Shown here: piece by piece, positions 1 through 25,135 of the stretch
How positions within the stretch are numbered: position 1 is the stretch's first letter
How the letters are laid out: each line of letters starts with the position of its first letter
DNA from: Syncephalis fuscata S228
Lineage: Eukaryota; Fungi; Zoopagomycota
DNA: 64,000 bases
Reading direction: 5' to 3'
Assembly: GCA_025786725.1 (NCBI GenBank)
Contig: JAHLTZ010000046.1
Coordinates: 1-64,000, forward strand
The notes under the pieces: generated by a model
The model's database searches: none
What the model saw: only the letters and a program-made list of their open reading frames with translations
Told to the model about the DNA's origin: nothing
Translations under genes and position numbers: made by a program

Positions 1-168
1 TGGTGGTGGCAGAACGCTAAATGGTGGTGGCAGAACGGTGGACTGATGGTGGCAGAACGGTGAAATGATGATGGCAGAACGGTGAAATGGTGGTGGCAGA
101 ACGCTAAAATGGTGGTGGCAGAACGGTGGACTGATGGTGGCAGAACGGTGAAATGGTGGTGGCAGAAC
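1..168 (+). repeat. 22-bp minisatellite array R, copy 1 (G-rich on +; runs off the window start)
   Basis: Units are a constant TGGTGGCAGAAC plus a 10-nt variant (GGTGAAATGG, GGTGGACTGA, GGTGGACTGG or GCTAAAATGG). Confidence 0.97.
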
Positions 169-849
169 AGCGGTATTCCACCATCTCACCGTTTTGCCAG
201 TTCACCGTCCTGCCACTACCATTCTGCCATTCCGCCATTCTGCCTTGACAGTCTCTGACTATCGACTATCAGTCTACATTTAAAGCATTTGCCGTTTCTT
301 TGAAGCTACAGGTAAGCATTGTTATGTTTTATTAAATATGTATTATTGTGCGGACAAAGACGGTGTAGCACAAATAGCCATGTACGCTTTTATAATCGGC
401 TGTTTACTATGGTAAGACAACTGGCGCTGCTATGTAATAAATACTTGCTTATTTTTACTTCAAACTACTTACCATTTAATCAACTGTTATTTTTACATAG
501 ATATTTAGGTATGCAGTGTTAGTGTTGCTGTTTGCATTCATGCACTGTGTTTTGTTTTCAAATAATACTAGCTTTTAACAAGATCACAAGCCTTCTTCCT
601 TGCCGTGTTATAATATGGAATAATATAGATTCAAATGAATGGTCAAATAAAGTGTAAAATAATGGCAATAAAGGTATAGTATGCGTATTGCACAAGCAAT
701 CAAGTAAAATATACAAACAATACGGCGAGTAACAAATAAACGAGTTTTATCAATAAGACATGATGAGTATAGTTTAGAATAGAATCAATGGATAAAATAA
801 TAGTGAAGATATACATAGACGATTAAGTAAGTACAATAAATTGAACCTA

Positions 850-1111
850 TAGCAATAAAGCTAGCGGCAATAAAATACCTGCTGTAAATGGGTTGTGCTT
901 ATTATATGATCGATCGATATATGACTTAATAAATACAGAATAGTAATGATATGGGTGGATAGAAGGCATATGCATACTAAATACTAAATCTATAATGACG
1001 AGTATTTTAATGGCTAATGCCATCCACCACACAGTTTCATGCCCAATAGATTGGATGTTGTTAAATTTAGCCATTTATCTTTCAAATCATACTAGATCAT
1101 CAGCAAATTGT
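850..1111 (+). repeat. Copy of dispersed degenerate element E
   Basis: Contains ATATGCATACT..ATA.TAAATCTATAATGAC.AGT.TTTT, then CATG..CAATAG, then TAGCCATTT...CAAATCA...AATTGT. The same motifs occur at 5753, 6122, 19862, 22414 and 22855. Confidence 0.75.
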
Positions 1112-1646
1112 TTAATATTATTATACTAGGCTTAACACAATCAAACCAATCAAACGAACCACTATTGCTATTATTAAAATGACCAGTGTGGGTGTAGCTT
1201 TATAGAATGTAACTATTTTTAGTATACTAGCAGTATAGTACAATTCAAATAATTGAATGGCATAACAAAGCTACTAGACACTATACTAATGTTGATTTAT
1301 AGCATATTTATTTAGTTAAAGGATGCTAAATGTTAAAGCGTTTATAAAAAAGTAGCTGTATTTGCTACTACCTATAATCAGGTTAGGCATGGCATTACAA
1401 TGGGAATCAGCACTATGATATAAGCATCATGTCAAATAGTTGACCTCCATATACACACACATTCAACGATACAAGAAGGCAACAGCAATGGCAATGTCTA
1501 TTAGCGAGTATAAGTACGACAACCACCGCTCGTTATAGTTGCAATGTTGGTGGTAATATTCAACTGACATCAGCGGCGATCAATGTCAATACACGCCAGC
1601 AAGCTGCACATATTAGCTACTGTATTAATAAGCAGTATAGTTAAGC

Positions 1647-1686
1647 AACATACAGCAACATACAGCAGCATACAGCAACATACAGC
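1647..1686 (+). repeat. 10-bp tandem repeat (AGCAACATAC) x4; mirrored at about 12724-12763
   Basis: agcaacatacagcaacatacagcagcatacagcaacatac. Confidence 0.85.
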
Positions 1687-3629
1687 TGTTGAAACGCATG
1701 TTAGTACGCATGCAACACCAGCGATTGATTCTATGCTATAATTACAAAATAAATAGTAGCGTCATTATGGTTGATTGTAATCAAAATACGTGCCGACGGC
1801 CAATATATATTAAATATTGTTAATATTTAATGCTAATATTGCCATTTCTATTTGTGGTGCCTTTTCACGATTTTTCCAACATATGTCAGTTATATGCGCC
1901 AATGCGTCAACGCCATGCGGTTATAGTAGATGCTATTACGTATTTCTAGCTGTATGATTGATAGAATCAAGAATTGGTAAAGTTAATTAATAAAGGCTAT
2001 AATAGTCCTTTTTTTGTTATTTTGACAATAAAAGCCCACACAAATACTAATTAAAAAATGTATCGATTGCTTAATAGATAGCCAATTGCAACTTGACAGT
2101 ATCAATCCCTGTAGCCATAATTGACCGTTAACAATTGCCGTCGATTTGCTAGTTATGTCGGCCAACCAACAGCGTCGGTGACATGATATAATTAATAAAT
2201 ATATTAATGATTGGTATTGCATATAGCTACAGTATGTGTGTAATAGCACAATAGCACGCAATGGTACACCGTCAGCCACACGTGCTGTGAACGGTATGCT
2301 AATCATGTACATTGGTTGTTTTATTAGCATTGGTGGTGGCGTGTATCAAGTATAACCGGCATCATTGGTAGATCATGTTATGCGGCATTGCCACTGGCAA
2401 CTATACAGATGCTATCAGTCATCCGTAATAGTACTGACAATGTTAATGGCTGTGAATGTGTTATACAGACAATGGCGATTTTGGCTACATACCGTATACA
2501 ATTATGTAGTGGAGTGTATAACAATAACAGCCATTGGTATAGTATTGTCCATTGGTGCGCACACCATACTGTTGCTGGTATACAAAAGCAAATCTTATGC
2601 ATAGTCATCAGTTAGTAACAGTGCATATTATGCTGCCACTTGCTAAACGAGCAGACGTTAACTGTCCATGTTATTTGTAGATATGTTTCAAATTGGCAAG
2701 TACCAACACTAGGTTTACTACTTGTGTCGCCAATTACCCAGTAACAACTGGCATGACAATTCTCAATAGCCAGCATTAGTATACATGTTTATATTGACGA
2801 TCGGTAATCTTCAACAGTAATTTCAATTGTGGCATTTATTAAACACAGCTCACTACTGTCGTTGGCAATACAAATAGCAACTATTTTGCCAATTCCTAGT
2901 TGTTGCACTGCAATACATAGCATTGGTTTACAATGGTAGTAAGCTGTATAAATAGCGCTCACTAACTGTTAGTATCGGTAGCTATATCATGCCAATGATG
3001 CACGCAGTATATTCAACACTAACTGTCGACCAGTAACCAGCAATACACAATAACAGATAGCACTAATGTAGCCATATGATTAACTGATACCCATGTTACA
3101 TGTCTATTAACCTATAGCCGGCTATGGAAATAATCAAATATCCATACTTTATCGGTGTTGACGCGCGATTACTAGCATATTGCTTAACAGAATATTGCTA
3201 TACTATTATATTGGCTATTGTTAATCAGTTGATACAGCTAATCAGCAGGTATCCGTAAATACTATGCAACCAGCTAGTCGGTAAACAACATGGATTAATA
3301 GCGTTTGGCCAGCTATATATATATATTGAAAACATGCATGGTGCTTAGTTGTCCATTTGCTAATAGCGTTTGCTATTAATTTCTACTATTTAGATAGATA
3401 TTAACAATACGATCTTGTCAATAGAATAATGCTAATTTCTATAGTAATCATGAGCAATATTACAATGTTGCCATTGCCAGCTAACTAATACAGCTGGCTA
3501 TACGTTGATGGCAACAGTAATTTAATGTTTTCATGTTCACTACTGACCATTGACGGCTGCTTGATTGTTTATTAATGCTTATATATATATTATACAATTA
3601 TCCATGTTAGTAATGTAGCTGTTTATATG

Positions 3630-4620
3630 TTATAATTGATACATATTCATTATATAGCGCTCTGTAATAACGTTCATTGGCACTATTCCAGCGTCAAAAC
3701 TATTAACTTTGTCATAACATCGTTGGAAACTTTAAATAGCTGTATTAGCTCAATATCGATCTGTACCAAAATAGTTGCCATGTACATGCACAATAGTCTT
3801 TTTGTAATGCTCTATAGTCTGCAATACATTAATCGAATGATCTATGTCAAAGTATCACTATCATATCTATATGCTAAATATACTCATACATGTTTTGGTT
3901 ATTGCCAAGGTATGGCCAATTTCACTGTCGACTCGTTTATTGCACCGTTTAATCAATTTACCCATCACATCGGCTTTAATACTAAGAAGCCGTCCCAATC
4001 TTGTTGCCTTCTTTTGAATATGCTTAATTCAACGGAACATTTTACTTTGTTCTGTTTACTTACAAATCAACAACAGCTCATCAATACTACCAATTCCCAG
4101 TTGTAGACTGCCAATAAGCAGTGCAAATCCATCAGATATATCGTCGAAATTACATAATCGATTACGCCAGGTAGAACAACAACATAAGCGATCAGCTACT
4201 GAATACAACGTAATATGCTGTGTGCATGTGACGCTAATCGATGATGAAATAAAATGATACCTTTACGCATCAATGCCACAAATACTGACATTGGTTCTAA
4301 ATAATTAGCACTCTGTGTATTAGTATAGAATGAACGGAAACAGAATAGATCATAGCTACAAGGTAGCTAGCATTTCTTACGTGTATCCTCGAGCTTAATA
4401 GCATCAGTCGTCAATGGATGTATACGGAATATCTAGTATTCAATGTACTTTAATTCTGATTAATTGTCTATTCTATATCATTCATTAACAAATGCACGTA
4501 TTTCTGAATCAGTGGATGTTACTGCATCCACTTGGAACAAAGCTTTGCGCAATAGATTGGCTGTCTAGTGTATATCCATTAATATTATGGCTTCATTTTT
4601 CGCAGAAGCAATGCAGCTTT
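3630..4620 (-). pseudogene. Decayed CorA-family Mg2+ transporter (ALR1/MNR2-like), arm A copy
   Basis: Mirror of the 9790-10780 copy, with the same in-frame stops. Confidence 0.85.
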
Positions 4621-5399
4621 TCAATAATGCTGTCGCCGCATATTTGAACTAATATCAACCGACATTGCTGAAGCAAAGCTGTTACACCGGTCAGCTGTAC
4701 TTAATAGCGCTAATCAAATTCAACATCCTCCAGTCATAAATCCAATTTTCAGCGCTTGTATACAAATTTAATTGAGCAGTGCCGCGTATTGTATAGAAGT
4801 GGTCGCTGATCTAGCCGTTATTGGCATATTACGCCATAAATAAGCTGACAGTCTAAATTAACCACCAACAAAAGCTGTCGATTGAATAATCCTTGTAACT
4901 TCAAAATAAACAAAACACGGATTTACCAGAATATACATATACAATACAGTTTAATGATTTGTAGCGGCGTGTAGCAATAGCTGACGGCGTAATAAAAATC
5001 TCGACCCAATTAACAAGCGTGCTTATATACCACAAAAGGCTATGTAGCCGCTGCAACAACTGTAGCTTGCTATTTACAAATATTCAACAGCATAGAAGAA
5101 GCCATGCTGAATAGACTGAATGAAAGTAGACATGAACGACAAGCGGCAGATCTTACAACAAATAAAGCTACTAACAAGTGAACCACTGTAACAAACTGCG
5201 CACGTTTATTAGAAAACAAAGCACTACGCAATAAGACGAGTAGACACGCTAAAGTGTATAGACAGGAAAGTAACTGCTGCAGTGTATATGGACCAATGAG
5301 AGATAAAAAGGAATGAGCTGAGCTTTACAACCAATAGACCTAGCGCCAAATAAACAGCAGTTTTGAGTAGCGCATGGCTATCATATGACAGAACGATAC

Positions 5400-6270
5400 A
5401 GAATGAAACGAATATATAAAGTAAAAAGTATGAATAGCAGTGGTATAGCTACTAAGCATATATGCATGAGTGAATGAGCGACATTAGTCGACATTTATAA
5501 ATAATAAAGCTAGAACAGAAATAAACATATTTTTTGGATAGAGCAAGGCTATACGAGTATAGAGTGATGTATAGAATGATAAATGTACGGTAAGAAAGCA
5601 TGTAAAACGACATCAAAGCTATAGTGTATATAGCGCAATGAATGGAGAGAGAAAAGTGTATTGGGACAAACAGATGATAGAATGTACCTAGTATGTTATA
5701 AAATGGTATATAGAGGTGTGGGATATAAAAGAATGGTATACGTGAATAGAGGATATATGCATACTGGATAATGAATCTATAATGATGAGTATTTTGATGA
5801 TAGACGTCACTCACCGCCCATCATCATGTTCAATAGACTGGATGTTATTAAAAATAGTCATTTGACCACCAAGCAAACAACAAATGCGATGATGTGATAT
5901 TAAACAAAACCACCATTGTCCCATGTTCATAGAATAGATGTCTAGTTCAGTTACGCGATTATTATTAAAAAGTCATTTAACACAAATTATAATAAAGCTA
6001 TAGCGCACTGAGTGGACTGAGTGAAGCTGATTGAAATGCATAATAAATATAAAGTGTTCAACCTGTCATTGACTAATAGTAGGATGTAAAGATACAATTT
6101 AATGATATTATTAGATTAAAAATATATGCATACTAAATAATAAATCTATGATGGCGGTATTTTGGACCCTGACGTCAGGTACTTTTAATTTCATGTTCAC
6201 TAGAACGTGTGTGTAGGTCAGTTGCGCGAATACTATTAAATGTAGTCATCTAACACTAAATTGCAATTAT
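5400..6270 (+). repeat. Long copy of element E with internal sub-repeats, spanning the arm A / loop 1 boundary
   Basis: Clearly similar but diverged relative to 22100-22935, for example AATAAAGCTATA.CGCACTGAG.GGACTGAGTGAAGCTGATTGAAATGC at 5991 and about 22724. Confidence 0.85.
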
Positions 6271-8512
6271 CATTTAATTAAAAAACATTTTTTTTATAAA
6301 CATTCAAATTATTCTGCCCACTTAACCGGCTTAGAAGTCAAAGAACACCAACTGTAAATATGCTGTACCCTTTATTATGTTTTGAGGTTTTAAAGCTGTC
6401 TTTATCTTCAATTAATCTCTAAAAATTTAAAGTAATTATGGTTTTATAAGCTTAATATTTGCTAATTCGACGCATTTATAAAGTCGAATTTTAAACAAAA
6501 GCAATGCCATTTGCTAGTGCATAAACTATATTTTTGGAATAAAACTAGTATTTTTGTGAATAAAGAACTAATCAAACAGTTATTCTCTAAACATCATGAC
6601 CGCGAATAAATCACGTTGTCCAACGTGTGGAAAGGGTTTTCCGTCGTTAGCCAGCCGTAGGAAGCACGACTTTGAAGAACACAAGGCACAAATAAACGTA
6701 TGGAAAGGTGAAGGTAAGTAATGTAGCTACGACTGAATAAATCAATCCACTTAACGATCTTCTACGACAGAACTACTTTTTGTTTGTACTAAACAGATGG
6801 GCGTTTTGGATGTCCGTTTAAAAATTGCACTGGCAGTTGCGCTACAACGGAAGGATTCAAAAAGCATCTAAAAAAGCACGAAGCTTATATTACTTATTTC
6901 GAGATGGAAAACAAGGAAGCTCAAGTCGGAGCAAAACGACTTTATCAAGATGATAAAAAAGCGACAAGCTTTAAAAACAGTGATGACGACGTATCACTGT
7001 TCACCAAAAAAAAGCAGAAGATTGGAAAGGAGCTATATTCTACTCCTACTCCTACTCATAGCACACCACTGGCGGATGCATCGCTTTCCTACGATGATGC
7101 AATTCTTAGTGCATTCAACGCGCTTCAAGCGTCGCCAAAATGCCAACAGAAGGCAAAACTAGTTGCAAAATCTAGCAAGTTACATCCTCTGTCGCTCACA
7201 ACTGGAGATGGGCGTTCAACGTTTCACGTGCTGGCTGTCTCTGAAGCAATCTCACGGATTCTCTTTGCTCAGCCAAAAGGGGAAATTATTGCACCACTGA
7301 TTACACCCTCAGCAGCAGACAATGCCTGCCTTAATAGTAGCAAGACAGCTGACAACCGTTTACGTCATTGCTTGCAACATGGGCTGTTTGGTGAAAAACT
7401 GAAACAATGTGACATCATTGAAATGAACGATGAAATCGCCGAGCTATTACAAAGAGACTGGCATATTTGGCCACAAATGCGCTACGTATCAGCGCAATTA
7501 TTCAGCAATGCTATACTTGTTGAAGATAAGCAAATTCTACTGATCAACTGCGTGGAGGCGTACGGCCGCAGATGTACCATCGATGTACATCATGAGACAG
7601 CGTGGCGTTCACCATCTGTGCCAGATGATGACGACCTTCGCTATAATGGAATTAAAGTTGTGGTGGACACATACAACAACTCAAAAAGACTGTTAATAGG
7701 AACGCATTCTTCAAATCTTCTTGTGACGTCGAGTGTCCTATTAAGAAATAATCAACAGATTATCCAGCTCGGCCCAGTACAAAGGACATTAGTCTAAAAG
7801 ATCCACGGGTTTATTTGGACTCTAAAAGCATTGAAAAATCAATATGCCTTTTCAATAAGGGCAATAAATGTTGTCACATTGATTATCTTGATTCATGTCA
7901 CAGTTACGCCAGGTTCGGTCGAAGTTCCATTGTCCTTCGACATACACACTTTGCCGCTCAAGCTCAGCGGCAACCAATTCTGTCACTCGCCGCCCTTTTA
8001 CCATTTGGACATTGGCGGACTATGAAATTTCTCGATTAACACAAGCAAAAATCGGATCGCAGTTGTTCCAAACAATTGCAACTGCTGTAATCAATAATGG
8101 CGAAAGGCCAAGCTTCAAATGTCAGATGTGCAAAACATTGCAAACCAATGCAAAGAAGATAAAGTCTTGGTGTTCATAAAGCTTATTCTTAAACAGTTCG
8201 ACGGCCAAGATCATATTCTAATTATCGGCAACAAGATATTGGACACACATCTGCAAGGCTTAGCAAACATTGTTACAGGAAGTTTAAGCGATGCAAACAA
8301 GGCGGTAAAGAAAGAACTGTCTAAAATATTTCAAAAATAATTAATGCAATGCTATCTTATTCAGCTGTCTTGTTTGTATTAAAGCTATCGCATTAACATT
8401 AAACGACTTATTGACCATTTATTATAATTTGTGTTAAATGATTTTTTAATAATATTGCGTAATTGGACTACACATCTATTCTACTAAAGATAGGGACAAA
8501 TGGTGAGTTTTA
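5905..8512. other. Loop 1: unique 2.6-kb spacer of palindrome 1
   Basis: Lies between the near-identical arms. Its core is single-copy in the window. Confidence 0.93.
6596..8340 (+). CDS. Spliced gene for a ~550-aa protein with two N-terminal C2H2 zinc fingers and an unrecognised C-terminal domain (3 apparent single-base deletions)
   Basis: Exon 1 (6596-6713) reads MTANKSRCPTCGKGFPSLASRRKHDFEEH. A GTAAGT intron from 6714 to AG 6796 (or AG 6770 plus one indel) joins in frame to CPFKNCTGSCATTEGFKKHLKKH (6811-6879) and ORF 6904..7797. ORFs 7815, 7895 and 8119 overlap in successive -1 frames up to the stop at 8340. Basic NLS-like stretch KRLYQDDKK...KKKQK. Confidence 0.8.
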
Positions 8513-11500
8513 TTTAATATCACATCATCGCATTTGTTGTTTGCTTGGTGGTCAAATGACTATTTTTAATAACATCCAGTCTATTGAACATGATGATGGG
8601 CGGTGAGTGACGTCTATCATCAAAATACTCATCATTATAGATTCATTATCCAGTATGCATATATCCTCTATTCACGTATACCATTCTTTTATATCCCACA
8701 CCTCTATATACCATTTTATAACATACTAGGTACATTCTATCATCTGTTTGTCCCAATACACTTTTCTCTCTCCATTCATTGCGCTATATACACTATAGCT
8801 TTGATGTCGTTTTACATGCTTTCTTACCGTACATTTATCATTCTATACATCACTCTATACTCGTATAGCCTTGCTCTATCCAAAATATGTTTATTTCTGT
8901 TCTAGCTTTATTATTTATAAATGTCGACTAATGTCGCTCATTCACTCATGCATATATGCTTAGTAGCTATACCACTGCTATTCATACTTTATATATTCGT
9001 TTCATTCTGTATCGTTCTGTCATATGATAGCCATGCGCTACTCAAAACTGCTGTTTATTTGGCGCTAGGTCTATTGGTTGTAAAGCTCAGCTCATTCCTT
9101 TCTTATCTCTCATTGGTCCATATACACTGCAGCAGTTACTTTCCTGTCTATACACTTTAGCGTGTCTACTCGTCTTATTGCGTAGTGCTTTGTTTTCTAA
9201 TAAACGTGCGCAGTTTGTTACAGTGGTTCACTTGTTAGTAGCTTTATTTGTTGTAAGATCTGCCGCTTGTCGTTCATGTCTACTTTCATTCAGTCTATTC
9301 AGCATGGCCTTCTTCTATGCTGTTGAATATTTGTAAATAGCAAGCTACAGTTGTTGCAGCGGCTACATAGCCTTTTGTGGTATATAAGCACGCTTGTTAA
9401 TTGGGTCGAGATTTTTATTACGCCGTCAGCTATTGCTACACGCCGCTACAAATCATTAAACTGTATTGTATATGTATATTCTGGTAAATCCGTGTTTTGT
9501 TTATTTTGAAGTTACAAGGATTATTCAATCGACAGCTTTTGTTGGTGGTTAATTTAGACTGTCAGCTTATTTATGGCGTAATATGCCAATAACGGCTAGA
9601 TCAGCGACCACTTCTATACAATACGCGGCACTGCTCAATTAAATTTGTATACAAGCGCTGAAAATTGGATTTATGACTGGAGGATGTTGAATTTGATTTA
9701 GCGCTATTAAGTACAGCTGACCGGTGTAACAGCTTTGCTTCAGCAATGTCGGTTGATATTAGTTCAAATATGCGGCGACAGCATTATTGAAAAGCTGCAT
9801 TGCTTCTGCGAAAAATGAAGCCATAATATTAATGGATATACACTAGACAGCCAATCTATTGCGCAAAGCTTTGTTCCAAGTGGATGCATAACATCCACTG
9901 ATTCAGAAATACGTGCATTTGTTAATGAATGATATAGAATAGACAATTAATCAGAATTAAAGTACATTGAATACTAGATATTCCGTATACATCCATTGAC
10001 GACTGATGCTATTAAGCTCGAGGATACACGTAAGAAATGCTAGCTACCTTGTAGCTATGATCTATTCTGTTTCCGTTCATTCTATACTAATACACAGAGT
10101 GCTAATTATTTAGAACCAATGTCAGTATTTGTGGCATTGATGCGTAAAGGTATCATTTTATTTCATCATCGATTAGCGTCACATGCACACAGCATATTAC
10201 GTTGTATTCAGTAGCTGATCGCTTATGTTGTTGTTCTACCTGGCGTAATCGATTATGTAATTTCGACAATATATCTGATGGATTTGCACTGCTTATTGGC
10301 AGTCTACAACTGGGAATTGGTAGTATTGATGAGCTGTTGTTGATTTGTAAGTAAACAGAACAAAGTAAAATGTTCCGTTGAATTAAGCATATTCAAAAGA
10401 AGGCAACAAGATTGGGACGGCTTCTTAGTATTAAAGCCGATGTGATGGGTAAATTGATTAAACGGTGCAATAAACGAGTCGACAGTGAAATTGGCCATAC
10501 CTTGGCAATAACCAAAACATGTATGAGTATATTTAGCATATAGATATGATAGTGATACTTTGACATAGATCATTCGATTAATGTATTGCAGACTATAGAG
10601 CATTACAAAAAGACTATTGTGCATGTACATGGCAACTATTTTGGTACAGATCGATATTGAGCTAATACAGCTATTTAAAGTTTCCAACGATGTTATGACA
10701 AAGTTAATAGTTTTGACGCTGGAATAGTGCCAATGAACGTTATTACAGAGCGCTATATAATGAATATGTGTCGATTATAATATATAAACAGCTACATTAC
10801 TAACACGGATAATTGTATAATATATATATAAGCATTAATAAACAATCAAGCAGCCGTCAATGGTCAGTAGTGAACATGAAAACATTAAATTACTGTTGCC
10901 ATCAACGTATAGCCAGCTGTATTAGTTAGCTGGCAATGGCAACATTGTAATATTGCTCATGATTACTATAGAAATTAGCATTATTCTATTGACAAGATCG
11001 TATTGTTAATATCTATCTAAATAGTAGAAATTAATAGCAAACGCTATTAGCAAATGGACAACTAAGCACCATGCATGTTTTCAATATATATATATAGCTG
11101 GCCAAACGCTATTAATCCATGTTGTTTACCGACTAGCTGGTTGCATAGTATTTACGGATACCTGCTGATTAGCTGTATCAACTGATTAACAATAGCCAAT
11201 ATAATAGTATAGCAATATTCTGTTAAGCAATATGCTAGTAATCGCGCGTCAACACCGATAAAGTATGGATATTTGATTATTTCCATAGCCGGCTATAGGT
11301 TAATAGACATGTAACATGGGTATCAGTTAATCATATGGCTACATTAGTGCTATCTGTTATTGTGTATTGCTGGTTACTGGTCGACAGTTAGTGTTGAATA
11401 TACTGCGTGCATCATTGGCATGATATAGCTACCGATACTAACAGTTAGTGAGCGCTATTTATACAGCTTACTACCATTGTAAACCAATGCTATGTATTGC

Positions 11501-14241
11501 AGTGCAACAACTAGGAATTGGCAAAATAGTTGCTATTTGTATTGCCAACGACAGTAGTGAGCTGTGTTTAATAAATGCCACAATTGAAATTACTGTTGAA
11601 GATTACCGATCGTCAATATAAACATGTATACTAATGCTGGCTATTGAGAATTGTCATGCCAGTTGTTACTGGGTAATTGGCGACACAAGTAGTAAACCTA
11701 GTGTTGGTACTTGCCAATTTGAAACATATCTACAAATAACATGGACAGTTAACGTCTGCTCGTTTAGCAAGTGGCAGCATAATATGCACTGTTACTAACT
11801 GATGACTATGCATAAGATTTGCTTTTGTATACCGGCAACAGTATGGAGTGCGCACCAATGGACAATACTATACCAATGGCTGTTATTGTTATACACTCCA
11901 CTACATAATTGTATACGGTATGTAGCCAAAATCGCCATTGTCTGTATAACACATTCACAGCCATTAACATTGTCAGTACTATTACGGATGACTGATAGCA
12001 TCTGTATAGTTGCCAGTGGCAATGCCACATAACATGATCTACCAATGATGCCGGTTATACTTGATACACGCCACCACCAATGCTAATAAAACAACCAATG
12101 TACATGATTAGCATACCGTTCACAGCACGTGTGGCTGACGGTGTACCATTGCGTGCTATTGTGCTATTACACACATACTGTAGCTATATGCAATACCAAT
12201 CATTAATATATTTATTAATTATATCATGTCACCGACGCTGTTGGTTGGCCGACATAACTAGCAAATCGACGGCAATTGTTAACGGTCAATTATGGCTACA
12301 GGGATTGATACTGTCAAGTTGCAATTGGCTATCTATTAAGCAATCGATACATTTTTTAATTAGTATTTGTGTGGGCTTTTATTGTCAAAATAACAAAAAA
12401 AGGACTATTATAGCCTTTATTAATTAACTTTACCAATTCTTGATTCTATCAATCATACAGCTAGAAATACGTAATAGCATCTACTATAACCGCATGGCGT
12501 TGACGCATTGGCGCATATAACTGACATATGTTGGAAAAATCGTGAAAAGGCACCACAAATAGAAATGGCAATATTAGCATTAAATATTAACAATATTTAA
12601 TATATATTGGCCGTCGGCACGTATTTTGATTACAATCAACCATAATGACGCTACTATTTATTTTGTAATTATAGCATAGAATCAATCGCTGGTGTTGCAT
12701 GCGTACTAACATGCGTTTCAACAGCTGTATGTTGCTGTATGCTGCTGTATGTTGCTGTATGTTGCTTAACTATACTGCTTATTAATACAGTAGCTAATAT
12801 GTGCAGCTTGCTGGCGTGTATTGACATTGATCGCCGCTGATGTCAGTTGAATATTACCACCAACATTGCAACTATAACGAGCGGTGGTTGTCGTACTTAT
12901 ACTCGCTGATAGACATTGCCATTGCTGTTGCCTTCTTGTATCGTTGAATGTGTGTGTATATGGAGGTCAACTATTTGACATGATGCTTATATCATAGTGC
13001 TGATTCCCATTGTAATGCCATGCCTAACCTGATTATAGGTAGTAGCAAATACAGCTACTTTTTTATAAACGCTTTAACATTTAGCATCCTTTAACTAAAT
13101 AAATATGCTATAAATCAACATTAGTATAGTGTCTAGTAGCTTTGTTATGCCATTCAATTATTTGAATTGTACTATACTGCTAGTATACTAAAAATAGTTA
13201 CATTCTATAAAGCTACACCCACACTGGTCATTTTAATAATAGCAATAGTGGTTCGTTTGATTGGTTTGATTGTGTTAAGCCTAGTATAATAATATTAAAC
13301 AATTTGCTGATGATCTAGTATGATTTGAAAGATAAATGGCTAAATTTAACAACATCCAATCTATTGGGCATGAAACTGTGTGGTGGATGGCATTAGCCAT
13401 TAAAATACTCGTCATTATAGATTTAGTATTTAGTATGCATATGCCTTCTATCCACCCATATCATTACTATTCTGTATTTATTAAGTCATATATCGATCGA
13501 TCATATAATAAGCACAACCCATTTACAGCAGGTATTTTATTGCCGCTAGCTTTATTGCTATAGGTTCAATTTATTGTACTTACCTAATCGTCTATGTATA
13601 TCTTCACTATTATTTTATCCATTGATTCTATTCTAAACTATACTCATCATGTCTTATTGATAAAACTCGTTTATTTGTTACTCGCCGTATTGTTTGTATA
13701 TTTTACTTGATTGCTTGTGCAATACGCATACTATACCTTTATTGCCATTATTTTACACTTTATTTGACCATTCATTTGAATCTATATTATTCCATATTAT
13801 AACACGGCAAGGAAGAAGGCTTGTGATCTTGTTAAAAGCTAGTATTATTTGAAAACAAAACACAGTGCATGAATGCAAACAGCAACACTAACACTGCATA
13901 CCTAAATATCTATGTAAAAATAACAGTTGATTAAATGGTAAGTAGTTTGAAGTAAAAATAAGCAAGTATTTATTACATAGCAGCGCCAGTTGTCTTACCA
14001 TAGTAAACAGCCGATTATAAAAGCGTACATGGCTATTTGTGCTACACCGTCTTTGTCCGCACAATAATACATATTTAATAAAACATAACAATGCTTACCT
14101 GTAGCTTCAAAGAAACGGCAAATGCTTTAAATGTAGACTGATAGTCGATAGTCAGAGACTGTCAAGGCAGAATGGCGGAATGGCAGAATGGTAGTGGCAG
14201 GACGGTGGACTGGCAAAACGGTGAGATGGTGGAATACCGCT
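8513..14241 (-). repeat. Arm A': right arm of palindrome 1; 13299-14241 is also the outer part of the left arm of palindrome 2
   Basis: Reverse complement of 169-5904 with a few substitutions and indels, including a 7-bp deletion near 8990. Confidence 0.97.
9790..10780 (+). pseudogene. Decayed CorA-family Mg2+ transporter (ALR1/MNR2-like), arm A' copy
   Basis: Manual translation gives FRIHPLTTDAIKLEDTRKKC*L...FCFRSF, YLEPMSVFVALMRKGIILFH, DGFALLIGSLQLGIGSIDELLLI, LGRLLSIKADV, VQIDIELIQLFKVSNDVMTKL and IVPMNVITERYIMNM. These match the fungal CorA motifs IHPLTTEDI..EETREK, YLEP, SIDELVL, LLSTKADV, NDVMTKL and PMNVITGLWGMNV. Several in-frame stops; the GMN motif has become IMN. Confidence 0.87.
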
Positions 14242-15210
14242 GTTCTGCCACCACCATTTCACCGTTCTGCCACCACCATTTCACCGTTCTGCCACCACCA
14301 TTTTACGTTCTGCCACCACCATTTTAGCGTTCTGCCACCACCATTTTAGCGTTCTGCCACCACCAGTCCACCGTTCTGCCACCACCATTTCACCGTTCTG
14401 CCACCATCAGTCCACCGTTCTGCCACCACCATTTCACCGTTCTGCCACCACCATTTTAGCGTTCTGCCACCACCATTTCACCGTTCTGCCACCACCATTT
14501 TAGCGTTCTGCCACCACCATTTTAGCGTTCTGCCACCACCAGTCCACCGTTCTGCCACCACCAGTCCACCGTTCTGCCACCACCAGTCCACCGTTCTGCC
14601 ACCATCAGTCCACCGTTCTGCCACCACCAGTCCACCGTTCTGCCACCATCAGTCCACCGTTCTGCCACCACCAGTCCACCGTTCTGCCACCATCAGTCCA
14701 CCGTTCTGCCACCATCAGTCCACCGTTCTGCCACCACCATTTTAGCGTTCTGCCACCACCATTTCACCGTTCTGCCACCACCATTTCACCGTTCTGCCAC
14801 CACCATTTCACCGTTCTGCCACCACCAGTCCACCGTTCTGCCACCACCATTTTAGCGTTCTGCCACCACCATTTCACCGTTCTGCCATCACCACTTCACC
14901 GTTCTACCACCACCATTTCACCGTTCTGCCACCACCATTTCACCGTTCTGCCACCACCATTTCACCGTTCTGCCACCACCATTTCACCGTTCTGCCACCA
15001 CCATTTTAGCGTTCTGCCACCACCATTTCACCGTTCTGCCACCACCATTTCACCGTTCTGCCACCACCATTTCACCGTTCTGCCACCATCAGTCCACCGT
15101 TCTGCCACCACCAGTCCACCGTTCTGCCACCACCATTTCACCGTTCTGCCACCACCATTTCACCGTTCTGCCACCACCATTTCACCATTTTGCCACCACC
15201 ATTTTACCGT
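14242..15210 (-). repeat. 22-bp minisatellite array R, copy 2 (about 44 units, C-rich on +)
   Basis: Tandem GTTCTGCCACCA followed by CCATTTCACC, CCATTTTAGC, CCAGTCCACC or TCAGTCCACC. Confidence 0.98.
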
Positions 15211-18200
15211 TGAACAATTGAACGGTTGAACCGTCGGACTCACTTCCACCACTTTTGACTCCACTCTCTTTTCATTCCTTTTAGTGAACATAAAATTAAA
15301 GTACCTGACATCTGGGTCCAAAATACCATCATCATAGATTTATTATCCAGTATGCATATATTTTTAATCCAACAATATCATTAAGATGTATCTTTACATC
15401 CTACTCTTAGTCAATGACAGGTTGAACACTTATATTTATTATGCATTTCAATCAGCTTCACTCAGTCCGCTCAGTGCGTTATAGCTTTATTATAGTTATT
15501 TTTATTATTAATAACTGTTTATTACAATTATTAACCATTTAATGTGATTTGTGTCAAATGGCTACTTTTGATATTCGCGCAACTGGCCTGCACATTTGTT
15601 CTATTGAACATGGGGACGGGTGGTGAGTTTTATTAACGATCAAATCATCACATTTGGTGTGATTTGGTGGTTAAATGGCTATTTTGATTATTTACGCGTT
15701 TGAACTAAACATTCAACCTATTGAACATGGAGCTGGGTGGTGAGCGACATCAAAGTTTAAAACACTTGTCATTATAGATTTATTATCCAGTATGCATATA
15801 TCTCTATCTACCTACACCACTCCCTTTTATTCCGCACTTCTATGTATCATTCTACGACATACTGGACACATTCTGTTCATTAAGCACACCAGCAACTCTA
15901 CTCATTCCCTCCTTGCGTTATATGCACTATAGTTTGACATCGTTTTATATGTCATTTTACACTCGCCCATCTATGCTCAATCCAAAACTGGTTTTATTTT
16001 TGTTCTAGCGTTATTATTAACAACTGTCGACTAATGTCGCTCATTGATCATGCATATATGCTCAGTAACTATACCACTGCTGTCCATACTTTTTACTTTG
16101 TATATTCGTTTTATTATCCAGTAAATACGCGCTAGCTATTACCGTTGTCTGTTTGGTTCTAGCACCACTATTAGAAAAGTTCACGCAAGTTGCTTATCTG
16201 CTCATGCATATATGCTCGATAGCTTTAACAAAGCTAGTTGTCTTTTAACTAGCATAGCTGATAGCTGTTATGCTATTTTACCGTACAGTTACTATGCGCC
16301 ATCAATAACTACTGTCAGCTTGACGCCAGCTTTAATATTGACAAGTTTGACTCGTTCCGCTTAGTCATTCCTTTCCAAGGCGCACTATAGCTTTAATGCT
16401 GCTACTCACACAATTACTTTTGGTATTTTATTTGCTCCATATTATTGTATGCTTAATGGCTATGCTTTATTTGCAGAAGCTATACGTTCCTTGTTAGCTG
16501 TTTGTTGCAAAGTTTAGCTCTGAGCACTTCTTTTACTCTTTGCACACAAACGCGCAAGTAGAATAGCCTTCTTACACTGCTAGTGCTCTTTTTGCTGTTT
16601 TCCAGTGCTGATATGTTGCAATGGTATCGAACGGGCCAGCGATGAACTGGTATAAGCTATTATACCAAATAAAGCTTGTTATTACAAAATAGATATTCGC
16701 TATGGGTGTTATGTATACGGCTTTAAAAGTGTCGTATAGCTTATTGCAGGTAATCATGTATTGCGCTATAGCTACTTGAGCACAAGGACAAAGTGTACGT
16801 ATATTTACCATGTGGCCGTAGACAGTGCTGGCTACTCTATTCGACACAGTTAAAAGCAATAATAAACTTGGCCAAAAACAATTTGCTTTAAAGATTTTAT
16901 TAGATGGATTGCATTAGTATTCAACATATAAGCCATTGGTATTTACTGTAGCTACAAGCTTGAAACTGGTCCCATTTAGCTGCTTTGCGTGCCGCCTAAA
17001 TGATCGGCATTGTTTGAAATAAAGCCATAGCTGATATTGCCAAATAGACAGATTTACTTGCTATGCTACATGTAAAGTTTAGCATAGATCATTTTTACGC
17101 TTAGTCGGTTAAGCCGTGTAATCTAGATTTAATCCATCAGCTTATCGCGTTGTAAAGAGCTTGCCAATATTAATGTTCAGACAATATAATGACAGCAATA
17201 AAGACTGTTTTGCAATAAGTGTACAAGAAAACACACGGTTTACTACATATTACACTAATAGTTACATGTACTGAAGATTCTACTGGAATGGTTGTAGCTG
17301 CTTATACGGAAGACTAAGAGCAATTGCGTAGTACATTGGTCATAGACGGTTTTAGACGACTCATGTTTTATTACGACATTTTCCACAACTATCACAATAC
17401 ATAAGCTGGCTTTACCGCTCCTCCGAACCAACATTGCACCTTTATCTTCTCTTTCTACTCTTTACCACTCGATATACGCTACACTCATTCGCCCTTACTG
17501 CCATTTGTTGTCCAATATGCTTTGCACTTGCTAGCCGTCTAATGATTACAAGATCACTGCTGGTTGCTGCTATATGTACTAAGGTCGGTAAACGGGCGTG
17601 GGAGGTGCGATGCAGTTGTGCCTTTTGGCTATGAAGCACTGGATATGCAGTGTTCTAGAAGCTATATATCACGCAGTGTGTACCCCAGCATGCTGTAGAA
17701 GGCGCTTGTCTGCACATAGTTGATTGGTCTTTTGTATAGTAACATTGGTACGCTTACCGTGTGTTTGTTTGCGAGGTTGCCTTGCTGAGTATCTGGCTGT
17801 TGAGGCGACATAAGGTTTGCGCTTGAAGATATCTGATATCTGATGGTGCAGAGCAAATGTTGTTTGGACAACCACTACTTATTGCGGTGTAGTCAAGCAG
17901 CAAACATCATTGGCACATGTGGCTCATCTCGTTTACTGACCCTCTTCAATAGATATAGATTTAAGCGATATTTAGATTTGGCAAGAACAGGGCCACAATA
18001 TGCTGTACAGTCATCCGGTTTGTACTAGTCTATCATTATTTATGTATTTCTTTGTTTAAATAAATAAATGTAGCATTTCTTATTTATTAACATACTACTA
18101 TTAGTTGCGTTCATATAAATACAGACATCTTCCCATTTAATAATAGTACTAGTTGTTTCTGCTATTGTTATTACACTGATAATAAACAACCTATTAAGCC

Positions 18201-18431
18201 ATTGAATGTGCTTTGAAGGCAAACGATTAAATTTGATGCATCCATGCAGTTGAGCTAGACAATTGCTCTGTTGAACATAATACGAGTGGTGAGTGAATCA
18301 AAGTTTAAAATATTTATTGGCATAGATGTATTATCCAGTACGCTTATATCCAACATTTACTTGTATCATTCGTCTATTATCGCATACTATTATGTATTAT
18401 TCTACAATACACTAGCCGCATTCTGGTTATT
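15211..18431 (+). repeat. Arm B: inner left arm of palindrome 2
   Basis: Reverse complement of 19781-23004. Position p pairs with about 38212-p, for example ORF 17843..18028(+) with 20184..20369(-). Confidence 0.97.
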
Positions 18432-19780
18432 TATGCGGCAACACACCTCACTCATCTCAACTATTACGCTGTACATTCACTAAATTGTATGCTGTTTATT
18501 GTATAACGCATAAGAGCTATGCAACGCCATTGTTGTTTTGATTCCAGATCTATTATTAAATAAGTGCTCTTTTATGTTTTAGCGCTTTTGGCATCGGAAA
18601 GGCGCTGTAGCATTAACACCATTTGTGCGGGCGCTTGAATGGCCATATTGGTACACTGTAGCTTTAGTACTGTAGATTTGACATAGATATTATATACTTT
18701 ATATTTATAGAGTGTTGTTATATATTGTTATACAGTATATTGGCCACACTACATCGATTGGCGTTGTCCATTTTACCCTAGCTTTATCTTTAAAGTTGGC
18801 CACTTATTACACTCATTTTGCTAATGCCCATGTTACACGGTTACAATTAGACATACTAGAAAATTAACAGTAAATTAACTAAAAATATACTGCAGTCCAA
18901 TTGATTCTGCCTACTCAAACGACAATTATGGCCATACTAAGCCAATAAAATGAGATGTGCAAATACTTAGTATTTTATCCAGAATTGTACATGCATATCA
19001 GAGTAATATTGGTTAAATATTGGTATAAATAATAAGTATACAGATAAATTTGTTTATTTACTGATGTAGTTTGTTTATTATGATAGTGCATTGATCAGTG
19101 TATGGTATATTGGCTATTAGCTATCAATTCAGCCTATTCTAGTGCAGCCACTGTAGCCACTGTAGCCATTTCAGCTAAGGGCCGCTTAGTATGGTCCTCG
19201 CAGGTCATTACTTGTATTTCAGCTACTGTATTTTGTTTATTTTACGTAGTTTTACGTAGTTTACGCATCACTTGCTTCCCTGCGTTGCTTCTACGTATTT
19301 GTCTATGTAATAGTGCACTGCACACCATACTTGCTCCATTTCACTTATGTTGGCCTCAGTCCACACTGTATATCGCTCAGTACCTTCCCAACAGTCCCAC
19401 TTTTTGATATGAATATATAACAGCATCAAAAGCTAAGTTGAGATAAACCCAAGGTTTAAAGCTGTGAGCCAACCATTGCACCATTTCCGGTTGGCCTTGC
19501 CATTGCTGTGAATACGCATTGTTCCGTTGATCAGCACCAAAGCCATTGCTAATTGACAACAGCTGGTTTGTCTACCAGAAGGTTAAACAGCGTGGATGTG
19601 CATGAGCAAAATAGTTTAATTTTATTAATGATAAAGCTAGTGCAAAAATAAATATGGTTGGATAGATGAAGGATGGACGATAATAAAATGATATGTAGAA
19701 TAGCAAATGTACGGTAAAAAACATAAAAGCAGTGTCAAACAGTGTATATAGCGTAATGAGCAAAGTATATTGCCGCATGT
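18432..19780. other. Loop 2: unique 1.35-kb AT-rich spacer of palindrome 2
   Basis: No credible intact ORF. Both edges are remnants of element E in inverted orientation. Confidence 0.92.
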
Positions 19781-22700: not shown

Positions 22701-23004
22701 TTATTAATAATAAAAATAACTATAATAAAGCTATAACGCACTGAGCGGACTGAGTGAAGCTGATTGAAATGCATAATAAATATAAGTGTTCAACCTGTCA
22801 TTGACTAAGAGTAGGATGTAAAGATACATCTTAATGATATTGTTGGATTAAAAATATATGCATACTGGATAATAAATCTATGATGATGGTATTTTGGACC
22901 CAGATGTCAGGTACTTTAATTTTATGTTCACTAAAAGGAATGAAAAGAGAGTGGAGTCAAAAGTGGTGGAAGTGAGTCCGACGGTTCAACCGTTCAATTG
23001 TTCA
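19781..23004 (-). repeat. Arm B': inner right arm of palindrome 2
   Basis: Reverse complement of 15211-18431. Confidence 0.97.
22100..22935 (+). repeat. Long copy of element E next to the minisatellite (mirror at about 15280-16110)
   Basis: Three sub-repeats containing (C/T)ATGTTCA(A/C)TA; homologous to 5400-6205. Confidence 0.85.
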
Positions 23005-24192
23005 ACGGTAAAATGGTGGTGGCAAAATGGTGAAATGGTGGTGGCAGAACGGTGAAATGGTGGTGGCAGAACGGTGGACTGATGGTGGCAGAACGGTGGA
23101 CTGATGGTGGCAGAACGGTGGACTGATGGTGGCAGAACGGTGAAATGGTGGTGGCAGAACGGTGAAATGGTGGTGGCAGAACGGTGAAATGGTGGTGGCA
23201 GAACGGTGAAATGGTGGTGGCAGAACGGTGAAATGGTGGTGGCAGAACGGTGGACTGATGGTGGCAGAACGGTGGACTGGTGGTGGCAGAACGGTGGACT
23301 GGTGGTGGCAGAACGCTAAAATGGTGGTGGCAGAACGCTAAAATGGTGGTGGCAGAACGGTGAAATGGTGGTGGCAGAACGGTGAAATGGTGGTGGCAGA
23401 ACGGTGAAATGGTGGTGGCAGAACGGTGAAATGGTGGTGGCAGAACGGTGAAATGGTGGTGGCAGAACGGTGGACTGGTGGTGGCAGAACGGTGAAATGG
23501 TGGTGGCAGAACGGTGGACTGGTGGTGGCAGAACGGTGGACTGGTGGTGGCAGAACGGTGGACTGGTGGTGGCAGAACGCTAAAATGGTGGTGGCAGAAC
23601 GCTAAAATGGTGGTGGCAGAACGCTAAAATGGTGGTGGCAGAACGGTGAAATGGTGGTGGCAGAACGGTGAAATGGTGGTGGCAGAACGGTGAAATGGTG
23701 GTGGCAGAACGGTGGACTGATGGTGGCAGAACGCTAAAATGGTGGTGGCAGAACGGTGAAATGGTGGTGGCAGAACGGTGAAATGGTGGTGGCAGAACGG
23801 TGGACTGATGGTGGCAGAACGGTGGACTGGTGGTGGCAGAACGGTGAAATGGTGGTGGCAGAACGGTGGACTGGTGGTGGCAGAACGGTGAATGGTGGTG
23901 GCAGAACGGTGGACTGATGGTGGCAGAACGGTGAATGGTGGTGGCAGAACGGTGGACTGGTGGTGGCAGAACGGTGAAATGGTGGTGGCAGAACGGTGGA
24001 CTGATGGTGGCAGAACGGTGAAATGGTGGTGGCAGAACGGTGGACTGGTGGTGGCAGAACGCTAAAATGGTGGTGGCAGAACGGTGAAATGGTGGTGGCA
24101 GAACGCTAAAATGGTGGTGGCAGAACGGTGAAATGGTGGTGGCAGAACGCTAAAATGGTGGTGGCAGAACGGTGGACTGGTGATGGCAGAAC
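23005..24192 (+). repeat. 22-bp minisatellite array R, copy 3 (about 54 units, G-rich on +)
   Basis: Same four unit variants as copy 2, with a different order and length. Confidence 0.98.
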
Positions 24193-25135
24193 AGTGGTAT
24201 TCCACCATCTCACCGTTTTGCCAGTCCACCGTCCTGCCACTACCATTCTGCCATTCCGCCATTCTGCCTTGACAGTCTCTGACTATCGACTATCAGTCTA
24301 CATTTAAAGCATTTGCCGTTTCTTTGAAGCTACAGGTAAGCATTGTTATGTTTTATTAAATATGTATTATTGTGCGGACAAAGACGGTGTAGCACAAATA
24401 GCCATGTACGCTTTTATAATCGGCTGTTTACTATGGTAAGACAACTGGCGCTGCTATGTAATAAATACTTGCTTATTTTTACTTCAAACTACTTACCATT
24501 TAATCAACTGTTATTTTTACATAGATATTTAGGTATGAAGTGTTAGTGTTGCTGTTTGCATTCATGCACTGTGTTTTGTTTTCAAATAATACTAGCTTTT
24601 AAAAAGATCACAAGCCTTCTTCCTTGCCGTGTTATAATATGGAATAATATAGATTCAAATGAATGGTCAAATAAAGTGTAAAATAATGGCAATAAAGGTA
24701 TAGTATGCGTATTGCACAAGCAATCAAGTAAAATATACAAACAATACGGCGAGTAACAAATAAACGAGTTTTATCAATAAGACATGATGAGTATAGTTTA
24801 GAATAGAATCAATGGATAAAATAATAGTGAAGATATACATAGACGATTAAGTAAGTACAATAAATTGAACCTATAGCAATAAAGCTAGCGGCAATAAAAT
24901 ACCTGCTGTAAATGGGTTGTGCTTATTATATGATCGATCGATATATGACTTAATAAATACAGAATAGTAATGATATGGGTGGATAGAAGGCATATGCATA
25001 CTAAATACTAAATCTATAATGACGAGTATTTTAATGGCTAATGCCATCCACCACACAGTTTCATGCCCAATAGATTGGATGTTGTTAAATTTAGCCATTT
25101 ATCTTTCAAATCATACTAGATCATCAGCAAATTGT
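24193..25135 (+). repeat. Truncated third copy of arm A (A1): direct repeat of 169-1111 at offset 24,024
   Basis: Identity ends at CAGCAAATTGT|ATAAC, compared with CAGCAAATTGT|TTAAT at 1111. Confidence 0.96.

Follow-up and report, generated by a model that had tools for sequence, protein, structure and literature searches.

The closest described systems to the locus analysed here are the foldback (FB-type) elements, which have long terminal inverted repeats (TIRs) with tandem subrepeats and sharp termini; palindromic amplification seeded by short inverted repeats; the 2-micron system, with its Rep1/Rep2-STB and FLP/FRT components; and, for the encoded protein, the glycosylase AAG/MPG (PF02245), in which the roles of Glu125, Tyr127, Tyr159 and Arg182 have been described (PMC12347255). 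We examined the first 64,000 nucleotides (the window) of contig JAHLTZ010000046.1 of Syncephalis fuscata S228, a 150-kb contig (C313), and in it a gene at 6596-8340 that lies in the loop of a 14-kb palindrome. S. fuscata is a zoopagomycete and a parasite of Mucorales. The gene encodes a protein of ~560 amino acids (aa), comprising two C2H2 zinc fingers and about 520 further residues. The reading that we favour, and to which we give somewhat better than even chances, is that the gene is intact and encodes a zinc-finger, AAG-like protein of a large family tied to elements made of inverted repeats and arrays, of which it would be the element's own gene and not a passenger.

Results

The initial annotation of the locus, made from the letters alone, described a 5' exon and an intron that had been missed by open reading frame (ORF) prediction and that add two C2H2 fingers; this structure is borne out by the sequence and by the public gene model (Table 1). 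The NCBI protein BDF19DRAFT_486166 (372 aa) equals exon 1 plus exon 2 exactly, ending at the stop at 7797, so that the gene was neither hidden nor missed, the intron and both fingers being already in GenBank. The intron has a GTAAGT donor at 6717, a branch-like site (TACTAAAC) ahead of its AG and an acceptor at 6797, and the Mucor mucedo homologue carries an intron at the same place between the fingers. Read directly, both fingers show the C-x2-4-C-x12-H-x3-5-H spacing and the hydrophobic core of C2H2 fingers; between them lie 15 residues with no TGEKP linker, and both are kept in the consensus of a 58-sequence family alignment. The Pfam zf-C2H2 match of finger 1 is weak (E 0.004-0.01, below cut-off), C2H2 models match 10-13 of the 58 members, and the family profile matches CTCF fingers at E 2e-8. 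By the usual rules, the finger helix residues (S/A/S/K and T/E/G/K) spell no G-rich code in our own reading.

For the searches, exon 1 and exon 2 were used as separate queries, and an intact sister copy (L003:1594-3030) stood in for the frameshifted window copy. A word search with exon 2 alone returned only its own gene model, and an ESM feature search gave nothing above 0.87. Weak Pfam matches of the five ORF pieces to GRF ribbon, CEP76_C and Pam3_gp32 were judged to be noise. No other ORF longer than 156 aa was found in 1-25150. The gene is genuine and protein-coding, and most likely intact.

The initial annotation could name no family for the C-terminal part and suggested a fold search for nuclease, recombinase or transposase domains. 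Structure prediction did reveal a recognisable fold, that of AAG/MPG, in which helices flank a curved antiparallel sheet much as in the C-terminal domain of FMT. AlphaFold2 with the family alignment gave a predicted local distance difference test score (pLDDT) of 85 when the whole protein was modelled and of 91 when the core was modelled by itself. When 48,161 PDB representatives were compared by VIA-align, human AAG ranked first with the full model (Z 8.9) and with the core (1ewn_A, Z 10.5, 157 of 200 residues, root-mean-square deviation 3.8 A); the next matches for the core were FMT C-terminal domains (Z 4.0), which belong to the same fold class as AAG. Foldseek returned AAG entries at probability 0.98-0.99 but with E about 3e-3, and a shape search of the ESM Atlas placed a PF02245 cluster first, with a template modelling (TM) score of 0.61 by target. 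The models thus show an AAG/MPG-like glycosylase fold in the core, and homology of the core to AAG/MPG is likely.

Profile alignment offers candidate counterparts for the active-site residues of AAG. Fifteen PF02245 proteins from Bacteroidota genomes were compared with the family by hhalign in local mode, the global mode being degenerate. The best local path, which is not significant, lays A-Q-L-L-A-G...V-E-x-Y-G-R...D-x-H of the family on A-x-x-L-L-G...V-E-x-E-A-Y...D-x-A-x-H of PF02245, and its low-stringency continuation lays I-G-T...N-x-L-V-T-S-S...R on Y-G...N-V-V-T...L-x-R. On this path the motifs follow the same order in both families: A..LLG, VE-x-Y, D..H, G...N.VT and then a strand-borne Arg. 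With residues numbered throughout from the Met at 6904, the same non-significant path pairs E218 with the catalytic Glu125, Y220 with Tyr127, H229 with His136 and R279 with Arg182. Spacing is the same in the family and in AAG from E to Y (+2) and from E to H (+11), and differs slightly from E to R (+61 versus +57). On this alignment an invariant Glu would stand at the place of the catalytic one, and catalysis by the glycosylase-like core is plausible. AAG/MPG is a single repair gene, whereas the family is multi-copy and fast-evolving, and in its protein the core is joined to a pair of C2H2 fingers, an additional N-terminal alpha/beta domain and a tail of helices. The S. fuscata assembly itself yielded no canonical PF02245 match.

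The protein belongs to a family that is large, unnamed and so far confined to Mucoromycota and S. fuscata. Besides the window gene, S. fuscata has a diverged but open paralogue on contig C35 (497 aa, 34% identity, with its own upstream finger exon) and a decayed one on contig C304. A profile of two S. fuscata proteins found Mucorales proteins that were 31-39% identical, and an exhaustive profile search extended the family to at least 1,306 clusters at E <= 1e-3 (312 at E <= 1e-30), which supplies the C-terminal part with the family that the initial annotation could not name. All named members are called 'hypothetical protein' and come from S. fuscata, from Mucorales (Mucor, Rhizopus, Apophysomyces, Parasitella, Phycomyces, Absidia, Lichtheimia, Rhizomucor, Syncephalastrum and Sporodiniella) or from Mortierellales (Linnemannia, Entomortierella, Mortierella and Dissophora). 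Pfam holds no model for the family beyond the fingers, and a literature search found no description of it. In the 58-sequence alignment P95, E218, D227, P365 and N444 are invariant, and the near-invariant residues include Y220, R222, H229, Y247, R279 and D281 (Y220, R222, H229 and R279 each conserved in at least 90%).

In a quick tree, the window-type protein groups with proteins of Mucor, Apophysomyces, Rhizomucor, Absidia and Phycomyces in a subclade of 95% support; the C35 paralogue falls outside it, and the two S. fuscata paralogues are not sisters. As S. fuscata parasitizes Mucorales, transfer of the window-type gene from a host is possible on this topology, with ancient paralogy as the alternative.

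A link between the family and a foldback-type structure comes from Mucor mucedo (JALPTJ010000013.1, the stretch L053). There the homologue lies inside a sharply bounded 4.1-kb element (about L053:7831-11930) between inverted repeats of 1.06 kb (about L053:7831-8873 and 10725-11930). From the outside inwards, each repeat consists of the terminus (TA, then CAGCGGCTCC...), AAAGTTCG-type subterminal repeats, an array of about 25 copies of 13-18 bp, and the start of the gene itself, both finger exons included; over their inner 487 bp the two repeats are 99.8% identical. The element ends in TA-CAGCGG on both sides, and the flanking TA is not distinguishable from a palindromic terminus. Neither empty sites nor a known transposase were found for this element. 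By its anatomy, that is, long TIRs with tandem subrepeats and sharp, identical termini, the M. mucedo unit is a foldback-type TIR element.

The window resembles foldback elements in that its palindrome is capped by inverted 22-bp arrays at the ends of its arms, with the outer ends not visible. It differs from them in several respects: the family protein is no transposase of the DDE, P or MuDR type, the target duplication in M. mucedo is ambiguous (TA), no dispersed copies of the 22-mer element occur outside the amplified block, and the palindrome boundaries in S. fuscata lie in copies of another repeat, which points to fold-back amplification and not to transposition. As a separate observation on gene models, the annotated N-terminus of the M. 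mucedo protein EV154DRAFT_477757 (MRDNV x9, L053:7990-8450) is a translated minisatellite, and the true start is likely at L053:8451.

That other repeat, here called DE, is a dispersed non-autonomous TIR element of 1.0-1.3 kb with inverted ends of about 260 bp, and a first look at the genome yielded about 1,000 candidates at 78-81% identity. We considered the window gene as a transposase or cargo of DE and rejected this, as the outer DE termini face the gene, which lies outside both copies. Each of the three independent family loci in S. fuscata has DE beside it, and two of them also have array-bearing palindromes. At the C35 locus (464600-477650) an inverted gene fragment lies upstream of the paralogue, and a DE copy downstream of it is followed by a palindrome with 2.4-kb arms (98.7% identical), the centre of which is filled by 30-bp arrays with GTGGTGG. 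Near the dead copy on C304 there are DE and B-arm-like sequences.

Ten foreign loci were examined for arrays and inverted repeats. A non-coding array of at least 350 bp lies within 3 kb of the gene at five of them (Mucor mucedo, Syncephalastrum, Absidia cylindrospora, Lichtheimia corymbifera and Dissophora), while several homologues sit among ordinary genes and have no repeats nearby. Arrays are thus close to about half of the homologues examined, and membership of the family does not always go with a repeat element. In Apophysomyces an array lies 5.5 kb off, beside a decayed paralogue, and in Absidia repens there are only two short arrays (90 bp upstream and 78 bp within the gene) and an inverted partial gene copy 10 kb away; inverted partial gene copies also occur at M. 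mucedo, Dissophora and C35. The array units differ widely between homologue loci. A crude event count for array proximity gives p about 0.08 by our own arithmetic, and we regard the association of family members with arrays as suggestive.

Two of the foreign loci call for separate remarks. In Absidia cylindrospora (L057:13160-16997) a 16-bp unit forms about 52 and about 130 repeats 1.4-5 kb downstream of the gene; a 744-aa protein without a Pfam match has been annotated over part of these repeats and is probably a spurious ORF. In Sporodiniella umbellata (L055:7142-14508) three family paralogues (736, 526 and 662 aa) stand head to tail among ordinary neighbours.

The gene of the window is split into four ORFs in frames 1, 0, 2 and 1, which the initial annotation attributed to three single-base deletions in one ~550-aa frame. 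Four sister copies that are 98-99% identical, on contigs C26 (25 kb), C217 (10 kb), C99 (18 kb) and C263 (5.6 kb), all colinear with window 1-25 kb, confirm this: relative to all four, the window is one base short after 7770 (GG versus GGG), 7891 (TT versus TTT) and 8098 (GG versus GGG). The short-read check proposed at the outset gave the same answer, as contigs built from the short reads of three runs have the additional base at 7770, 7891 and 8098; the sole contig without it at 8098 is a contig of run X3 that ends two bases further on, at 8100. In a contig of run X1, C is inserted after 7892 and G>C occurs at 7897, instead of the T after 7891 of run X3, which is either a variant copy or an alternative alignment.

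It is quite unlikely that the frameshifts are real in this contig's copy, which would make the window a pseudogene even if its sister copies were live. The deletions are present in the assembly, every assembled copy has at least one indel (C26 lacks a base at 8219, C217 has an additional T at 6816, and C99 and C263 each lack an A in the A8 run at 7006, all of them private), and a truly decayed paralogue is known on C304. However, all three missing bases fall in homopolymers of 2-3 bases, the non-coding flanks of this copy, and of no other, have lost at least 11 further single bases, neither substitutions nor stops have built up, and the deleted form is found in no read-derived contig at 7770 or 7891 and at 8098 only in that of X3. 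The C217 copy is open from the Met of MENKEAQ (window 6904) to the shared ...SKIFQK end. Because of the homopolymer sites, the flank deletions, the private indels of the sisters, the open C217 copy and the short-read contigs, the three frameshifts are most likely consensus errors of long-read assembly, as far as sequence comparison can tell.

The inverted-repeat map places the gene in the loop of the palindrome, as the initial annotation had it, but the true loop is 5997-8417 and not 4522-9888, because the arms go on with small indels. Two inverted DE copies flank it, and all palindrome boundaries, namely those of loop 1, of loop 2 and of the outer junction near 25100, lie inside DE copies. 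For this reason the palindromes look like duplications of the fold-back or breakage-fusion-bridge type that were seeded by inverted DE copies and then amplified. Under this scheme the palindrome would have formed between the two inverted flanking DE copies, leaving the gene in a 2.4-kb spacer, and the ~24-kb block would have been amplified afterwards. Symmetry centres that alternate between loop 1 and loop 2, with inverted DE copies on either side of each, and window arms that are near-100% identical are what palindromic amplification seeded by short inverted repeats would give. Such amplification accounts for the geometry but not for the gene or for its recurrence in other fungi.

The block is multi-copy and breaks the assembly: arm and loop-2 segments recur at 99-100% identity on roughly ten contigs, many at contig ends, and within the 150-kb contig another 39 kb of sequence adjoins the repeat unit. 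Segments of the ~24-kb block, from arm A, loop 2 and the arrays, are found at 96-100% identity on many contigs, often at their ends. Throughout the assembly, the 22-mer arrays are found only on contigs of the amplified block. We rejected the 22-mer array as a terminal telomere, since the polarity of the G-rich strand is wrong at the contig's left end; a run of four TTAGGG units is absent throughout the 29-Mb assembly, so that telomeres are either unassembled or of another type.

Of the 22-bp arrays, the initial annotation proposed that their roughly 100 TGGTGGCAG sites could be bound by the fingers of a maintenance or partition factor loosely like Rep/STB. The count was accurate, as TGGTGGCAG occurs 101 times in the window (0.3 expected by chance), the C35 paralogue's array also has GTGGTGG, and arrays recur near homologues. 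As in the 2-micron system, the window gene lies between large inverted repeats with an array nearby. We nevertheless consider a Rep/STB-like factor very improbable. No Pfam match to Rep1, Rep2 or FLP was found among the ORF pieces of the gene, which is the sole ORF longer than 156 aa in 1-25150. The protein resembles Rep1, Rep2 and FLP neither in sequence nor in fold, and no recombinase lies in the window unit. There are only two fingers, of non-canonical spacing, the array units differ between loci as described above, and the unit is chromosomal, on a 150-kb contig, and not a circle.

Table 1. Coordinates of the gene, its protein features and the surrounding repeats (window positions unless a contig is named)
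Feature	Position	Strand	Basis or remark
Exon 1 (40 codons + 1 base; ATG at 6596)	6596..6716	+	Sequence; N-terminus of BDF19DRAFT_486166 identical
C2H2 finger 1, C-x2-C-x12-H-x4-H	6617-6682	+	Direct reading; finger kept in family consensus
Intron, 80 nt, between the two fingers; GTAAGT ... TACTAAAC ... AG	6717..6796	+	Sequence; splice used in BDF19DRAFT_486166
Exon 2: finger 2, linker, small alpha/beta domain, glycosylase-like core, helical tail	6797..8340	+	
C2H2 finger 2, C-x4-C-x12-H-x3-H	6811-6879	+	Direct reading; in frame with long ORF 6904-7797
Predicted AAG/MPG-like glycosylase-fold core, residues about 160-380	7381..8041	+	AlphaFold2 model, VIA-align, Foldseek, ESM Atlas
Motif V-E-A-Y-G-R ... 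D-V-H-H-E	7552..7593	+	E218 and D227 invariant, Y220, R222 and H229 at least 90%, in 58 sequences
Left palindrome arm	105..5996		Inverted-repeat map
True unpaired loop: promoter region, gene, 77 nt of 3' flank	5997..8417		Inverted-repeat map
Right palindrome arm	8418..14305		Inverted-repeat map
Left DE copy, outer terminus toward gene	4810..5974	-	
Right DE copy, outer terminus toward gene	8440..9600	+	
Partial DE copies	609-1076, 5999-6204, 15571-16205, 18267-18497, 19598-19945, 22009-22644, 24633-25100		
22-bp minisatellite array, cut by contig start	1..168	+	
22-bp minisatellite array, 44 copies, inverted relative to the first	14242..15211	-	
22-bp minisatellite array, 54 copies	23004..24196	+	
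Recurring block parts	C304:561-1761, C304:12164-13045, C350:470851-472051, C123:13926-15126		
Recurring block parts on small contigs	C82, C86, C89, C159, C206, C216, C220, C225, C237, C267, C320		

Discussion

The main choice is between a gene that belongs to its element and one that was merely carried along with it. According to the second view, an ordinary nuclear DNA-repair or regulatory gene was caught between inverted DE copies and amplified with them, with no tie to the arrays. The location of every palindrome boundary in DE copies is readily explained in this way, as are the position of the gene outside the DE termini, the homologues that lie among ordinary genes with no repeats nearby, and an array enrichment that is not significant. 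On the other hand, none of the three independent family loci in S. fuscata lacks an adjoining DE copy, and array-bearing palindromes occur at two of them; in M. mucedo, perfect TIRs surround the gene and take in its own 5' exons; and for a housekeeping gene the family would be very large and rich in fragments. We therefore consider a passenger gene rather unlikely, though it deserves to be kept in mind. The M. mucedo copy, in a foldback-type element with array-bearing repeats, also keeps alive one of the functions put forward in the initial annotation, that of a mobilization factor, whereas the likeness to Rep/STB suggested there did not hold.

In the reading that we prefer, the gene would be the element's own: its fingers would place the protein on DNA, the glycosylase-like core would flip and probably excise a base, and the protein would have a role in the spread or upkeep of the element. 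We further propose, as an unlikely but specific extension, that a zinc-finger-guided glycosylase is the enzyme of a new kind of selfish element in early-diverging fungi, in which an abasic site or nick made at the element's own repeats or at a target would drive copying, foldback formation or homing.

Several observations weigh against the preferred reading. With regard to the protein, sequence similarity to PF02245 is not significant (hhalign against the 15 proteins, E 0.38), a search of PDB sequences with the core profile by hmmsearch finds no AAG, and the core has no Pfam match; the family has Ile where AAG, in the alignment, has its intercalating Tyr162, and the residue matches are drawn from the hhalign path and from spacing, not from three-dimensional superposition. 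A transposase domain was found neither in the protein (by Pfam) nor elsewhere in the unit. With regard to the setting, the window gene lies outside the DE copies and 5.9 kb away from the arrays, and there are no non-coding arrays or inverted repeats beside the gene in Sporodiniella, Phycomyces and Lichtheimia ramosa. Over the ten foreign loci, array bases make up 6.1% within 3 kb of the gene against 2.9% beyond, an enrichment of ~2-fold, and the sign test stands at 4:5. With regard to expression and integrity, no read-derived contig shows the splice joint, the stretch is contained in no run that is recorded as RNA (the 'RNA?' label of one run is a guess), and the read-derived contigs that restore the missing bases are not assignable to the window copy rather than to its sister copies.

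The results bear on public annotation as well as on the biology of these fungi. If the frameshifts are indeed consensus errors, the public S. fuscata gene model has been shortened by assembly errors. The public M. mucedo gene model starts inside a repeat array. If the preferred reading is true, a very large fungal family that has neither a name nor a Pfam model would acquire a fold, a chemistry open to testing, namely zinc-finger-guided base flipping or excision, and a recurrent genomic setting of inverted repeats with minisatellite arrays. A glycosylase-like protein would then join the short list of proteins encoded by foldback-type elements, whose movement is poorly understood. Should the more specific proposal of a selfish element also be true, mobility or amplification would be begun by base excision and not by a transposase, recombinase or endonuclease. 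More generally, the preferred reading may also throw light on the origin and persistence of large, near-perfect palindromes in zygomycete genomes.

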